Assembly: GCA_002104945.1 (NCBI GenBank)
Contig: MCFH01000077.1
Coordinates: 62,001 to 126,000, forward strand
Length of the DNA: 64,000 bases
Direction: 5' to 3'
Source of the DNA: Piromyces finnis finn
Taxonomy: Eukaryota; Fungi; Neocallimastigomycota
In this document: positions 9,488 through 28,475 of the stretch, in pieces
Numbering within the stretch: position 1 is the stretch's first letter
Layout of the letters: each line of letters opens with the position of its first letter
Translations under genes and position numbers: made by a program
Notes under the pieces: generated by a model
What the model saw: the letters and a program-made list of their open reading frames with translations, nothing else
Database searches by the model: none
Told to the model about the DNA's origin: nothing

Positions 9488-10402
9488 TATTCACTTTTTT
9501 CGATTTCAATGATTTCAATTAGGGATGAGGATGAAATCCGTTAATTCTTTTAAATTCAATATGACACTATGACAATATTGTCTTTTTTTCATAACAATAA
9601 TAACTTTTTATATTAATAAATTAAAATTTTCTTAAACTTTAATTATTAATAAAATGTATTTTATTATGTTTTGTGTAACATTATCTTTATTAAAACGTAA
9701 TGTATTTGAAATGTATAATAATGTAATAGGAAATGATATTTTTTGAAATTTAAAAAAAAACAATCCTCTTTTTACTCTCACATATTATAATTAATTGTTT
9801 AGTTCTTTTTCTTTTCATGCCTAATATGCCTAATATCATTATTAAATAGAAACGGAAAAGGTAAATCTTTTAAATAAAGTTTTATATACTAGGTAGTAAA
9901 TAAATAAATAAAATTATAACAAAAATAAAATATAATACTAAATAATTAATTAATGAACAAAATGACAGGTAAATTTTTTTAAATAATTAAATATGAAACT
10001 GATTTTACGCTTTTTTTTTTTTTAAATAGAAAAAAAGGTCATCGGTAGTATGTTGAAATTATAAAAATAATCGTAAGTAAAAATAATGTTTTTTTCTTTT
10101 TAGTATTATTTTATTTTCTATTTAAAGTACTTTTTCGTTTTCTAGTAGAATCGCTTTCTTTTTACTTTCTTTTTTTTTAAAAAAAAAAAAAAAAGAATTG
10201 CTAAGCAACAATATTAAAATAATATAAATGACTAATTCTATATAAAATGAATCATCAATTCAAATTAATATATTGTTAAATTATATTTTATATATTAAGT
10301 AATATAATAAATTCATCTTGAATTTTTAAAAAATTTTTATTATAAAAACCAAAAAATTTTACTACTTTTCATTTAAAAAAATAAATTTAATAATAAAAAA
10401 AA

Positions 10403-13400
10403 ATGAAATTATCAACGCTAATAATTCTGTTAATTATACAATTAGTCAGCATTGTGGTAAGCATTATAATAGGAATAATGTCCTAATTTTAATATTTATA
10501 TTTAAAATATTAAGAAAAAATAACAGTTGTTAAAAAAAATATAACATTCATTTAAAAAAAAAGTAAATTGTATTAACGAATTATTGTATATTATTTTTTT
10601 TGTTGTCACATATTTTATTTTTAAAAATGAAATGAAAAAAAAATTGATAAATAATTATAAAAAAGTTTGCTGAAACTATAACTTTCAAACAACAAGGTGG
10701 AAGTGCAGAATTAAATGTTGAAAAAAACTCTACATTTAATGTTGAATTAAAAGGTAATCCAACTACCGGTTATAGCTGGTATTTAGATAATGTCAATGAT
10801 ATTGAAGACGCCATTGAATTATTAAATGGTGATGGTGATTACATTCAAGATAAATCTAAACCAGGAATGGTTGGTGTTGGTGGTACTTTTATTTTCAAAT
10901 TCCAAGTCAAGAAAACTGATAAATTACCAACCATAAAATTTGTTTATAAGAGAGTCTGGGAAGAAACTTCTATAGCTACTGCTGAAGTTATTTTAAAAAG
11001 TAATGCCAATGACTATGTTGAAGCTGAAAATGTTGTTTCTTTCACACAAAAAGGTGGTGTTCAAGAATTAGAAGTTAAAAAAGGTTTAAATTTTGATGTT
11101 AAATTAAGTGGTAATCCAACTACCGGTTATAGCTGGTATTTAGATAATGTCAATGATATTGAAGACGCCATTGAATTATTAAATGGTGATGGTGATTACA
11201 TTCAAGATAAATCTAAACCAGGAATGGTTGGTGTTGGTGGTACTTTTATTTTCAAATTCCAAGTCAAGAAAACTGATAAATTACCAAGCTTGAGATTTGT
11301 TTATAAGAGAATCTGGGAAGAAACTTCTATAGCTACTGCTGAAGTTATTTTAAAAAGTAATGCCAATGACTATGTTGAAGCTGAAAATGTTGTTTCTTTC
11401 ACACAAAAAGGTGGTGTTCAAGAATTAGAAGTTAAAAAAGGTTTAAATTTTGATGTTAAATTAAGTGGTAATCCAACTACCGGTTATAGCTGGTATTTAG
11501 ATAATATTAATGATATTGAAGACGCCATTGAATTATTAAATGGTGATGGTGATTACATTCCAGATGAATCTAAACCAGGAATGGGTGGTGTTGGTGGTGC
11601 TTTTATTTTCAAATTCCAAGTCAAGAAAACTGATAAATTACCAAGCTTGAGATTTGTTTATAAGAGAATCTGGGAAGAAACTTCTATAGCTACTGCTGAA
11701 GTTATTTTAAAAAGTAATGCCAATGACTATGTTGAAGCTGAAAATGTTGTTTCTTTCACACAAAAAGGTGGTGTTCAAGAATTAGAAGTTAAAAAAGGTT
11801 TAAATTTTGATGTTAAATTAAGTGGTAATCCAACTACCGGTTATAGCTGGTATTTAGATAATATTAATGATATTGAAGACGCCATTGAATTATTAAATGG
11901 TGATGGTGATTACATTCAAGATAAATTTAAACCAGGAATGGTTGGTGTTGGTGGTACTTTTATTTTCAAATTCCAAGTCAAGAAAACTGATAAATTACCA
12001 AGCTTGAGATTTGTTTATAAGAGAATCTGGGAAGAAACTTTCATAGCTACTGCTGAAGTTATTTTAAAAAGTAATGCCAATGACTATGTTGAAGCTGAAA
12101 ATGTCGTTTCTTTCACACAAAAAGGTGGTATTCAAGAATTAGAAGTTGAAGAAGGTTCATACTTTGATGTCAAATTAAGTGGTAATCCAACTACCGGTTA
12201 TAGCTGGTATTTAGATAATATTAATGATATTGAAGACGCCATTGAATTATTAAATGGTGATGGTGATTACATTCAAGATAAATCTAAACCAGGAATGAGT
12301 GGTGTTGGTGGTACTTTTATTTTCAAATTCCAAGTCAAGAAAACTGATAAATTACCAAGCTTGAGATTTGTTTATAAGAGAATCTGGGAAGAAACTTCTA
12401 TAGCTACTGCTGAAGTTATTTTAAAAAGTAATGACAATGCCTATGTTGAAGCTGAAAATGTTGTTTCTTTCACACAAAAAGGTGGTGTTCAAGAATTAGA
12501 AGTTAAAAAAGGTTTAAATTTTGATGTTAAATTAAGTGGTAATCCAACTACCGGTTATAACTGGTATTTAGATAATGTCAATGATATTGAAGATACCATT
12601 GAATTATTAAATGGTGATGGTGATTACATTCAAGATAAATCTAAACCAGGAATGGTTGGTGTTGGTGGTACTTTTATTTTCAAATTCCAAGTCAAGAAAA
12701 CTGATAAATTACCAGCCATAAAATTTGTTTATAGAAGATCTTGGGAAGGAGCTTCTATAGCTAATGCTAAAGTTATTTTAAAAATTAATGGCTATATTGA
12801 AGCTGAAAATGTTGTCACATTTACACAAAATAGTGGTGTTCAAAAATTGGAAGTTGGAGAAGGTTCATTCTTTGATGTCAGATTACCTGGTAATCCAAGT
12901 ACTGGTTACAATTGGAGTTTAGATAATATTGATGACATTAAAGATACTGTTGAATTATTGAAAAATGAAAACGGACTTAGTGATTACTATTACATCCCAA
13001 ATAATCCAGATCCAATGTTAATTGGTGGTGGTGGTTCTTATATTTTCAAATTCCAAGTCAAGAAAACTGATAAATTACCAACCTTGAAATTTGTTTATAA
13101 GAGATCCTGGTCAAGTGATCCAAAGAGTACAGTTGAAGTTGTTTTAAAAAGTAACATCTACGTTGAAGCTGAAAATGTTGTCACTTTTACACAAGATGGT
13201 GGTATTCAAGAATTGGAGGTTGAAGAAGGTTCATACTTTGATGTCAAATTAAGTACTAACCCAAGTACTGGTTACAACTGGTATTTAGATAATGCTGATG
13301 ACATTAAGGATGCCATCGAAGTATTAAATGATGATGGTGATTACATTCCAGATGAATCTAAACCTATCATGCCTGGTAGTGGTGGTACTATTGCTTTTCA

Positions 13401-14211
13401 ATTCCAAGTCAAAAAAACTGATAAATTACCAACCTTGAAATTTGTTTATAAGAGAATCTGGGAAGAAACTTTCATAGCTACTGCTGAAGTTATTTTAAAA
13501 AGTAATGACAATGACTATGTTGAAGCTGAAAATGTTGTTTCTTTCACACAAGATGGTGGTATTCAAGAATTGAAAGTTGAAAAAGGTTTATCTTTTGATG
13601 TCAAATTAAGTGGTAACCCAACTACAGGTTTCTTTTGGTTTTTAGAAAATGCCAGAGACATTAAGGATGCTATTGAAGTATTAAATGACGTTAATGACAA
13701 TTACGTTCCAGATGAATCTAAACCAGGAATGGTTGGTGTTGGTGGTACCTTTATTTTCAAATTCCAAGTTAAAGAAACTGATGAATTACCAACTTTAAAG
13801 TTTGTTTACAAGGGTGTAAGACGCCAAGCAATAAGTACTGCTGAAGTCATTTTAAAGGATAATAGCAACATTGACGACGAAAATGTTGTTTCTTTCACAC
13901 AAAGGGGTGGTGTTCAAGAATTAAAAGTTAAAAAAGGTTTATCTTTTGATGTCAAATTAAGTGGTAACCCAACTACAGGTTTCTTTTGGTTTTTAGAAAA
14001 TGCCAGAGACATTAAGGATGCTATTGAAGTATTAAATGACGTTAATGACAATTACGTTCCAGATGAATCTAAACCAGGAATGGTTGGTGTTGGTGGTACC
14101 TTTATTTTCAAATTCCAAGTTAAAGAAACTGATGAATTACCAACTTTAAAGTTTGTTTACAAGGGTGTAAGACGCCAAGCAATAAGTACTGCTGAGCTTA
14201 ACCTTTTATAA
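10403..14211 (+). CDS. Secreted protein of ten tandem chagasin-family (I42) cysteine-peptidase inhibitor domains; join(10403..10456,10666..14211), 1199 aa
   Basis: Exon 1 encodes a signal peptide (MKLSTLIILLIIQLVSIV) followed by a GTAAGC donor at 10457; an AG acceptor at 10664-10665 rejoins in frame. NP(T/S)TG(Y/F)xW occurs ten times (10756, 11113, 11470, 11827, 12184, 12541, 12892, 13258, 13615, 13966), each followed by a GxGG loop and usually an RxW loop, the three chagasin signature loops. Confidence 0.9.
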
Positions 14212-26444: not shown

Positions 26445-28475
26445 ATGAAGTTAAAGACTCGTATTATTACTATTTTTTCCATCACTCTAACCATTTGTAT
26501 TTTATTTTATTTAAATAAAAAAAGTAATATAAAACTAAATTTAGACAATATGAGTTCTATCGACAAAAAAACTGAAAGCATTGTAGTCATTGGTTCTGGT
26601 TTAGCAGGTTTAACTGCTACCATTGAAGCATACCAAACTGCTAAGAAAATATACAAAGATGAAATTGAAAAGAATCACTCTTTCCCAAAAATTTATTTAA
26701 TTGAAAAGGAAAAGAGTATTGGAGGTAATTCAGCAAAGGCTACCTCTGGTATTAATGGCGCTTTAACTAAATATCAAAAGGAACTCGGAATTGAAGATTC
26801 ACTTGAACAATTTTCAAAAGATACTTTAGTTTCAGGAGGTAATCTTAATGTTCCATCCCTTGTTAATACTTTAGTACACGATAGTAAGGATGCTGTTGAA
26901 TGGTTATCTCAATTTAATTTAATTCTTTCTGCTATCTCTCAATGTGGTGGTCATGAAATTCCACGTACTCACCGTCAAGCTCCAAGAGCAGATGGTAAAC
27001 CATCCCCAGTTGGTTGGAATATCATTTCTGCTTTAAAGAATTACATTCAAAATGATTTAAAGGATAATGTTGAAATTTTATTTAATACTCGTGTTCAAAA
27101 CATTCTTACCAATGATGACGGTAGTAAGGTTATTGGTGTCCAATATGAAACTACTAATTTAGAAACAAAGGAAACCAAACAAGATACTTTAGCTGCTGAT
27201 GCTATTATTTTAGCATCTGGTGGTTATGCTCATGATTGGACTGACACTTCCTTACTTCGTCGTTTTGGTGAAAAATCACTTGAAAATGTTCCAACTACCA
27301 ATGGTCCATTCGCCACTGGTGATGGTGTTAAGATGGGTACTGCTATCGGTGCCGCTGTTGTTAACATGGACAAAGTTCAAGTTCACCCAACTGGTTTTAT
27401 TAAATTAGCTGATCCATTTAACCCAACTAAATTCTTAGCCCCAGAAGCTTTACGTGGTTATGGTGGTATCTTATTAAACTCTGAAGGTCAACGTTTCGTT
27501 AACGAATTAAGTACTCGTGATTTAGTTTCTGAAGCTATCTTTAAAAATTGTTCTAATGTCGTTATGAAACACTACGATGCTAAGCAAGAAAAAGAAATTG
27601 AAAAGAAAATTGTTCGTGCTTGGCTTATAATGAATGAAGAAGGTGCTAAAGCTTTCGATATTGGTAGTATCAATTTCTATGCTAAGGTCGGTAATATTCA
27701 TATCATTGATGGTGTTGAAAAGGTTGCCGAACTCACTAACATTCCAGTTGATACCTTAAAGGCTACCATCAAAAAGTATAATGAAGATGCTGATAAGGGT
27801 TTTGATGAATTTGGCAAAACTAAATTCCCATTCAAATTCGCAGATGATAACAAATTCTACGTTTCTGCCATTACTCCATCTATCCACTACACTATGGGTG
27901 GTTTAGCTGTTAACTCTGTTGGTGAAATTCTTAAGCCAAGAAACAAGGTTGAAGTTAGCGAATTATTAAATACCCCAACTACTGTTGATGATCAAGTTGA
28001 CTTAAAACCTGTTCTTGCTTTATATGGTGCTGGTGAAGTTACTGGTGGAGTTCACGGTAAAAACAGATTAGCTGGTAATTCATTATTAGAATGTGCCGTT
28101 TTCGGTCGTCAAGCTGGTCGTCGTGCTGCTGAATCTGTTCTCTACTATAATAAGAATAGTGAAAATGAAGAAAATATTGAAACTCAATCTGGTCTTTCCA
28201 AGACTGATTATACTAGTCTTACTTTCCGTGAATACCATGAATCTGATGATAAGGTATACCTTAATCTTAAGAGTACCTTCCAATACGTTAAGCCAAAGCA
28301 AGCTTTATTAATCCAAAATCCAGAAAACCAAACCACTCAACAAGTTATTTGTTCTAATTTAGAAGATGGTGGTGATTATGGTGTTATTAAGATTTCCATG
28401 AATCAATTCAAGGAAGATAATTTAGGATTAAAGAACTTAGCTCCAGGAGATGCCGTACAAGTTAAACTTGCTTAA
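26445..28475 (+). CDS. OSM1: FAD-dependent fumarate reductase (Osm1/Frd1 flavoprotein family) with an N-terminal hydrophobic leader and a C-terminal extension
   Basis: Intronless 676-aa ORF with GSGLAGL, GGNSAKATSGING, GGHxxxRTH, QVHPTG, LAPEALRG, HYTMGG and GGVHGKNRLAGNSLLECAVFG. Confidence 0.92.
   Translation: MKLKTRIITIFSITLTICILFYLNKKSNIKLNLDNMSSIDKKTESIVVIGSGLAGLTATIEAYQTAKKIYKDEIEKNHSFPKIYLIEKEKSIGGNSAKATSGINGALTKYQKELGIEDSLEQFSKDTLVSGGNLNVPSLVNTLVHDSKDAVEWLSQFNLILSAISQCGGHEIPRTHRQAPRADGKPSPVGWNIISALKNYIQNDLKDNVEILFNTRVQNILTNDDGSKVIGVQYETTNLETKETKQDTLAADAIILASGGYAHDWTDTSLLRRFGEKSLENVPTTNGPFATGDGVKMGTAIGAAVVNMDKVQVHPTGFIKLADPFNPTKFLAPEALRGYGGILLNSEGQRFVNELSTRDLVSEAIFKNCSNVVMKHYDAKQEKEIEKKIVRAWLIMNEEGAKAFDIGSINFYAKVGNIHIIDGVEKVAELTNIPVDTLKATIKKYNEDADKGFDEFGKTKFPFKFADDNKFYVSAITPSIHYTMGGLAVNSVGEILKPRNKVEVSELLNTPTTVDDQVDLKPVLALYGAGEVTGGVHGKNRLAGNSLLECAVFGRQAGRRAAESVLYYNKNSENEENIETQSGLSKTDYTSLTFREYHESDDKVYLNLKSTFQYVKPKQALLIQNPENQTTQQVICSNLEDGGDYGVIKISMNQFKEDNLGLKNLAPGDAVQVKLA

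Follow-up and report, generated by a model that had tools for sequence, protein, structure and literature searches.

What is a chain of ten cysteine-peptidase inhibitor domains, of the family known as chagasin or ICP (inhibitor of cysteine peptidases), doing in an anaerobic gut fungus? The question is raised by a gene of Piromyces finnis, a fungus whose source is the horse gut (PMC12421816), which occupies positions 10403-14211 on the plus strand of the 64,000-nucleotide stretch of contig MCFH01000077.1 analysed here as a whole (the window). The answer that we favour, with a probability of about 0.62, is that it encodes a secreted, multivalent inhibitor built like beads on a string, which would act on foreign papain-like (C1) cysteine peptidases in the herbivore gut. 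The identity of the domains carries this reading, and it is therefore considered before the putative function, the history of the repeat array and the relatives of the gene in other organisms.

Domain identity and gene structure

The Pfam profile PF09394 (Inhibitor_I42; MEROPS I42) matches ten stretches of the translated protein with an E value of 7.6e-174 and a score of 565 bits (curated cut-off 27.2), accompanied by weak I-set and Ig_3 matches, and the same Pfam screen of the 1181-aa mature region found neither a CBM_10 dockerin (PF02013) nor any other real domain. A single unit suffices to retrieve amoebiasin-1 of Entamoeba (6cjz, 3.8e-9), together with the ICPs of Leishmania, Trypanosoma brucei and Pseudomonas and the chagasin of Trypanosoma cruzi, and its NPTTGYSW, GxGG and YRRPW/YKRVW motifs line up with those of the solved inhibitors. 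An AlphaFold2 model of unit 2, computed on a 74-sequence alignment, is all-beta, with a predicted local distance difference test score (pLDDT) of 93.7 and a predicted template modelling score (pTM) of 0.86; its best 14 Foldseek matches in the PDB are all chagasin/ICP (I42) inhibitors, headed by the complex of chagasin and human cathepsin L (2nqd_A; template modelling scores 0.68/0.74). Each unit is predicted with high confidence to be a chagasin-type immunoglobulin-like (Ig-like) beta-sandwich, and profile, solved relatives and modelled fold agree in upholding the chagasin/I42 identity suggested by a preliminary description of this DNA. When three consecutive units were modelled together the domains reached pLDDT values of 80-90, the linkers (residues 114-117 and 233-236) stayed below 50 and the pTM was 0.40; confidently predicted domains joined by low-confidence linkers point to independent beads on a flexible string.

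The three loops by which chagasins hold their targets can be followed through the whole chain. L2 reads NPTTG in eight of the ten units and NPSTG in the other two, N31, P32, T34 and G35 being invariant, and the glycines G70, G72 and G73 of the L4 motif GxGG are found in 10/10 units. The canonical RPW of L6 takes the form R-x-W (x being V, I or S) in units 1-8, KRPW being retained at this place in other fungal homologues. Across 74 diverse homologues L2 and L4 form the most conserved columns. NP[ST]TG is found ten times along the protein, at residues 49, 168, 287, 406, 525, 644, 761, 883, 1002 and 1119, that is, at intervals of exactly 119 aa (357 bp) over units 1-6 and of 117, 122, 119 and 117 aa thereafter, and the ten tandem units of about 119 aa of the preliminary description correspond to the ten PF09394 stretches. 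The protein thus shares its Pfam family, predicted fold and L2/L4 loops, and in 8/10 units the R-x-W of L6, with T. cruzi chagasin, the ICPs of Leishmania and T. brucei, Entamoeba EhICP1/2 and the Pseudomonas aeruginosa ICP. Those members of the family that have been characterised hold one domain in ~110-130 aa, whereas the P. finnis protein, known here from sequence, would string ten domains without proline in L6 into one secreted chain. The statement that the family is mostly single-domain holds only roughly, as multi-domain I42 proteins also occur among GC-rich, bacteria-like matches (e.g. P0009, P0011, P0033, P0066 and P0091) and in one named Phycisphaerae bacterium.

The gene model behind this protein consists of two exons. 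Sequence, spliced translation and the public model P0001 define exon 1 (10403-10456), which opens with the ATG and encodes the 18 N-terminal signal-peptide residues, MKLSTLIILLIIQLVSIV; it is separated by a 209-nt intron with 13% GC (10457-10665, GTAAGC..AAG) from exon 2 (10666-14211), which continues in phase through the ten I42 domains to a TAA at 14209-14211, followed by a second TAA. RNA contigs of two public runs (X1 and X2) join 10455/6 to 10665/6 across GT..AG ends, with zero depth inside the intron. As these contigs skip the intron exactly, the gene is transcribed and spliced in the way proposed in the preliminary description, whose signal-peptide exon and single intron are further backed by the identity to the 1199-aa model. 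A 5' untranslated leader (10300-10402) is covered by a contig of run X1 that begins at 10300 and continues through exon 1, placing the 5' end of the transcript near 10300, and the word depth of the ten-unit gene is high in four RNA runs. The spliced coding sequence of 3600 nt translates into 1199 aa with a single terminal stop, 0 Cys and 0 His; the earlier claim that cysteines and dockerins are missing stands. Cleavage of the signal peptide is likely after ..VFA, two residues into exon 2, and removal of these ~20 residues leaves a mature protein of ~132 kDa with a pI of 4.67. Its C-terminus, ..TAELNLL, has no hydrophobic tail, and thus a transmembrane segment or a glycosylphosphatidylinositol signal is unlikely, as read directly from the sequence. 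The window is strongly AT-rich (21.8% GC), and the GC content of 18.5% at third codon positions, together with the confirmed intron, indicates a fully domesticated gene. The protein is 100% identical to P. finnis BCR36DRAFT_170522 (1199 aa), labelled hypothetical protein by NCBI and already auto-named an I42 chagasin-domain protein in UniRef; the domain identity itself is therefore not new.

Putative function and targets

Chagasin complexes have been solved with cathepsin L, cathepsin B, papain and falcipain-2, and by homology each Ig-like domain of the P. finnis chain would present L2 (NPTTG), L4 (GxGG) and L6 (R-x-W) as three loops that together plug the active-site cleft of papain-like peptidases like a wedge, the outcome being a tight, reversible, substrate-competitive inhibition. 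Family members bind through three loops with Ki values from pM to 100 nM (PMC7863939), and the same occlusion of the C1 active site is to be expected here. Given that L2 and L4 do not vary and that eight units retain L6, the protein is most simply read as a secreted multivalent inhibitor of C1 peptidases. Outside the fungus, a single chain could hold more than one protease molecule in check; the likeliest targets would be cathepsins of fungus-eating ciliates, proteases set free from the cells of forage plants and bacterial C1 enzymes, and the goods to be protected would be the fungal wall, zoospores and secreted enzymes. Rumen ciliates do eat fungi and express cathepsins B and F at high levels, 41 C01A transcripts having been reported, 15 of them with signal peptides (PMC7200989, PMC6925433). 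On the fungal side, cystatins and stefins are missing from the group and reported as lost (PMC2784779).

Multivalency of this kind would have parallels in unrelated inhibitors. Plant multicystatins likewise line up tandem inhibitor copies in one secreted chain. Kininogens and equistatin also do so with domains directed against C1 peptidases (PMC7863939), but the cystatin and thyropin folds are unrelated to the Ig-like sandwich of chagasin, and the likeness is one of analogy, not homology. Closer in setting are the serpins of fungal and bacterial cellulosomes, e.g. the dockerin-bearing ones of Orpinomyces C1A, which are also protease inhibitors deployed beside secreted enzymes and, in the literature searched, the only inhibitor class found described for anaerobic-fungal cellulosomes (PMC4672494); they belong to a different inhibitor family and are directed against a different main protease class.

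Several points weigh against a secreted inhibitor of foreign peptidases. The inhibitory activity of fungal I42 domains is argued from homology, secretion is argued from the presence of a signal peptide, and the stoichiometry and the targets proposed above are likewise inferences. The protein carries no dockerin or wall anchor that would place its site of action, and steric crowding may keep some of the ten sites unoccupied. L6 is without proline in all units and lost in units 9 and 10, so that affinity or specificity may differ from those of the solved inhibitors. For the youngest copies, ratios of nonsynonymous to synonymous substitution (dN/dS) of about 1 or higher are uninformative because these copies differ by few changes.

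Finally, the target may be the C1 peptidases of the fungus itself. Under this alternative the chain would control secreted or vacuolar enzymes of its own cell, as chagasin does with cruzipain in T. cruzi; regulation of own peptidases is the characterised role of the family in trypanosomatids (PMC7863939; PMC2680270), and a signal peptide would equally route such a regulator to the secretory or endolysosomal path. Ten domains and a high transcript depth appear, however, excessive for the stoichiometric control of a housekeeping protease, and the dockerin-tagged paralogues described below argue for an extracellular site of action. Moreover, the window contains no C1 peptidase gene. We consider an endogenous regulator rather unlikely for these reasons.

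The flexible linkers bring up another alternative, in which the chain is a precursor whose linkers are cut after secretion to free ten single-domain inhibitors. Precursors holding multiple inhibitors are known in plants. The linkers are predicted to be disordered in the three-unit model, and a single-domain I42 protein that groups with the fungal clade does exist (P0054, encoded on the very AT-rich, fungus-like contigs L087/L088). Nevertheless, the linkers (..KSNANDYVE/AENVV..) contain neither a dibasic motif nor anything else that looks like a processing site, the sole KR being located inside L6, and the homologues of other genera have long linkers rich in Pro, Thr and Glu that are typical of stable spacers, which makes processing improbable.

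The repeat array

Tandem Repeats Finder reports 9.8 copies of a 357-bp period between 10682 and 14163, with 88% matches and a score of 4586. The units differ in a graded manner along the array. Unit 1 (10666-11022) has the loops GNPTTGYSW, GVGG and KRVW and a first stretch of ~30 aa unlike that of units 2-6. Units 2-5 (11023-12450) each measure 357 bp, as does unit 1, share 96-98.6% nucleotide identity and keep three canonical loops, with KRIW at L6; they are best read as the youngest or a homogenised core of the array. Unit 6 (12451-12801, 351 bp) carries RRSW at L6, and unit 7 (12802-13167, 366 bp), with NPSTG, GGGG, KRSW and a 5-aa insertion upstream of L4, is the most divergent, at 70-78% nucleotide identity to the other units. 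It is followed by unit 8 (13168-13524, 357 bp; TNPSTG, GSGG, KRIW) and by units 9 and 10 (13525-14208; 351 and 333 bp), which are 94.6% identical and, to judge from this similarity, a recent duplicate pair, unit 10 being a copy of unit 9 truncated at its C-terminus. In both of them L2 and L4 are intact and the R-x-W of L6 has given way to KGV-RRQ.

Comparisons between diverged units gave dN/dS values of 0.35-0.6, indicating that the copies are kept under constraint. Values of 1.0-1.7 were obtained for unit 1 against units 2-6. The first ~30 codons of unit 1 (10666-10755) are strongly diverged and the remainder is nearly identical to units 2-6; the edge between the two probably marks the boundary of a conversion or duplication tract and not positive selection. 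In an IQ-TREE phylogeny (LG+C20, 117 domains) the five units sampled (1, 2, 7, 8 and 9) form one clade with support of 100/98, and all ten do so in a FastTree tree of 441 domains. The ten units being each other's closest relatives, their amplification is lineage-specific, in agreement with the amplification postulated in the preliminary description. With its graded divergence and a loop motif gone from the last two copies, the gene offers a clean case of very recent tandem domain amplification.

The similarity of the units also allows for the possibility that the gene is real but its array was collapsed or expanded during assembly. Units 2-5 are near-identical over 357 bp, the 1199-aa protein has this assembly as its sole source (1 member, 1 contig), and in contigs built from short RNA reads the array is collapsed, one contig of 339 nt closing on itself with a period of 357. 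Counting repeats from RNA k-mer depth (in X1, 3056 for the collapsed contig and 335 for the unique 5' contig) was rejected as an approach, since transcript coverage is uneven and k-mers are shared unequally among units. Against an artefact, every unit has private substitutions and the divergence follows a clear order along the array, orthologues of other genera independently have 5-8 units, and the 3.5-kb array fits within one long read; the P. finnis genome was reportedly assembled from PacBio reads. We regard an erroneous repeat number as unlikely.

The gut-fungal family and its origin

The preliminary description presented the gene as a chagasin in a fungus, where the family is not a standard one. 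Its presence is real, yet it is no one-off: I42 chains of 2 to 8 units were found across anaerobic gut fungi (Neocallimastigomycota) and gut metagenomes. Among them are BCR32DRAFT_240379 of Anaeromyces robustus (786 aa, six domains), PIROE2DRAFT_64148 of Piromyces sp. E2 (666 aa), a 250-aa Neocallimastix protein with two domains and many gut metagenome and metatranscriptome proteins that reach 8 domains. One chain (P0002) has a signal peptide and first unit nearly the same as those of the window gene, and homologues bear the JGI label 'predicted secreted protein'. The domains of these chains are homologous, and Cys pairs and long linkers rich in P, T and E are frequent among them. Most of the chains end in a cap, a distinct C-terminal domain subtype which finishes in ..VKIKPE or similar and forms a clade of its own (100/94; P0025 domain 2, P0004 domain 6, P0002 domain 7, P0003 domain 7 and P0005 domain 5). 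The P. finnis gene has no such cap, its last unit being the truncated duplicate of unit 9.

Most fungal I42 domains, dockerin types included, fall into a 33-row clade in the IQ-TREE phylogeny (99/96). The dockerin types constitute a sister, more diverged subfamily that combines I42 domains with 1-3 CBM_10 modules, in contrast to the window gene, which has none; P0007, P0008, P0022, P0027, P0042, P0083 and P0118 belong here. These chains are annotated as DOC2 only or not at all, P0022 appearing at NCBI as 'Non-catalytic module family DOC2, partial' [Piromyces sp. E2] with no mention of I42. They are candidate cellulosome-bound cysteine protease inhibitors. The idea that the inhibitor protects cellulosomes is speculative for the window gene, given that it has no dockerin, and gains some footing from this subfamily. 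It is very improbable that the fold has been co-opted as a non-inhibitory structural, adhesive or scaffolding module at the cell surface or on plant fibre, since an Ig-like sandwich with weak I-set/Ig_3 matches, the loss of L6 in units 9-10 and the strong divergence of two dockerin-type paralogues (P0083 and P0118, with no Pfam I42 match at the 1e-5 search cut-off) are set against two loops, L2 and L4, whose conservation over 74 homologues and invariance in ten units are not expected of a purely structural role.

Regarding relatives outside the fungi, an exhaustive profile search of 1.84 billion representative proteins yielded 2712 matches, and the nearest single-domain relatives were placed by the context of their contigs (telomeres, GC content and neighbouring genes). 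After the fungal chains, the best scores belong to AT-rich sequences of gut protists, rumen ciliates included, which encode proteins of 110-160 aa with a signal peptide and a single domain. Contigs of two such clusters have (CCCCAAT)n ends, 15-22% GC and Arf/Ras and WD40 neighbours, the (CCCCAAT)n telomere being the feature by which macronuclear chromosomes of rumen ciliates are recognised in the literature (bioRxiv 10.1101/2022.01.05.474053; PMC6211341). Contigs L001 (158-529; also L002) and L004 (1433-1840) are rumen-ciliate macronuclear mini-chromosomes with secreted-type single-domain I42 genes, that of L001 beginning ~100 bp from the telomere, and at least two separate ciliate I42 lineages are present in the tree. 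Another cluster maps to a compact contig of a eukaryote, next to genes for an axonemal dynein light chain, eIF4E and seryl-tRNA synthetase. A very widespread gut eukaryote has a single-domain I42 gene at 5001-5429 of L085/L086 (31% GC, with compact genes, one of them for an axonemal dynein light chain), its protein being found in 194 collection blocks. On a 5122-bp contig of JGI sample 3300050046 two single-domain I42 genes (143 and 145 aa) are adjacent; in the tree P0141, one of the two, lies with the fungal clades on a side that has weak support.

Bacterial nesting of the fungal domains, as the preliminary description would have it, is not what the phylogeny returned. A scan of one prokaryotic genome per species with a search built on a 9-sequence alignment gave 518 I42 relatives over many phyla, the best 80 of which have 30-47% identity to a unit and loci of 39-72% GC; an earlier contig scan with the ten-unit alignment had given no match because its patterns were fungus-specific, and a protein atlas search returned I42 domains, mostly of bacteria, and nothing further. 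In the tree of 117 domains the fungal domains lie outside a clade (97/88) into which all 43 prokaryotic rows fall, and the fungal clades group weakly (75/97) with a few AT-rich protist rows that include one rumen-ciliate lineage. The deep branches are poorly resolved because the domain provides only ~110 aligned columns, and approximately unbiased tests rejected neither a single fungal clade (p 0.465) nor fungi and prokaryotes on one side (p 0.294). As the latter arrangement is not rejected, horizontal acquisition is plausible. The evidence thus argues against nesting inside the sampled bacteria, and it identifies neither donor nor direction, nor horizontal transfer as such. These data fit a single acquisition early in the anaerobic gut fungi, after which the domain multiplied.

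It is tempting to speculate further that free and dockerin-tagged chagasin chains together represent an anti-protease armour which arose from an arms race with ciliate predators and their food-vacuole and secreted cathepsins, that the domain was exchanged directly between ciliates and fungi instead of coming from bacteria, and that the growth to ten units is an ongoing adaptation of dosage or valency; such a scenario is tentative and, in our view, doubtful. The narrower proposal of a secreted multivalent inhibitor would already have consequences of its own. The known fungal inhibitors of C1 peptidases are the mycocypins of basidiomycetes, clitocypin and macrocypins (PMC7863939), and if the proposal is true, chagasin-based secreted multi-domain inhibitors would be a third, unrelated fungal solution and would add a layer of protease defence for gut fungi and their cellulosomes amid proteolysis and predators. 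This would be relevant to rumen ecology, namely fungus-ciliate interactions and nitrogen turnover, as well as to industrial applications of fungal cellulosomes, in which stability towards proteases counts. A natural inhibitor scaffold that is ten-valent and Cys-free is also of interest for protein engineering, and a chagasin-family inhibitor has already served as an epitope scaffold (PDB 5swk). Literature searches that paired chagasin with anaerobic fungi or with Neocallimastigomycota came back empty, and those with PF09394, Inhibitor_I42 and I42 plus Piromyces retrieved unrelated papers only; the assembly of ten domains in one chain, the occurrence of the family throughout Neocallimastigomycota, its dockerin-tagged branch and the link to ciliate I42 genes appear to be undescribed.

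The 64-kb window holds no other I42 segment, hidden domain or paralogue, and the neighbouring genes (ankyrin, TPR and FAD-dependent reductase) offer no functional context; the inhibitor gene lies in no cluster of carbohydrate-active enzymes or proteases. Unrelated neighbours are an ankyrin-repeat open reading frame on the minus strand at 95-1237 and, downstream of the inhibitor gene, a fumarate-reductase-like FAD_binding_2 open reading frame of 676 aa at 26445-28475.

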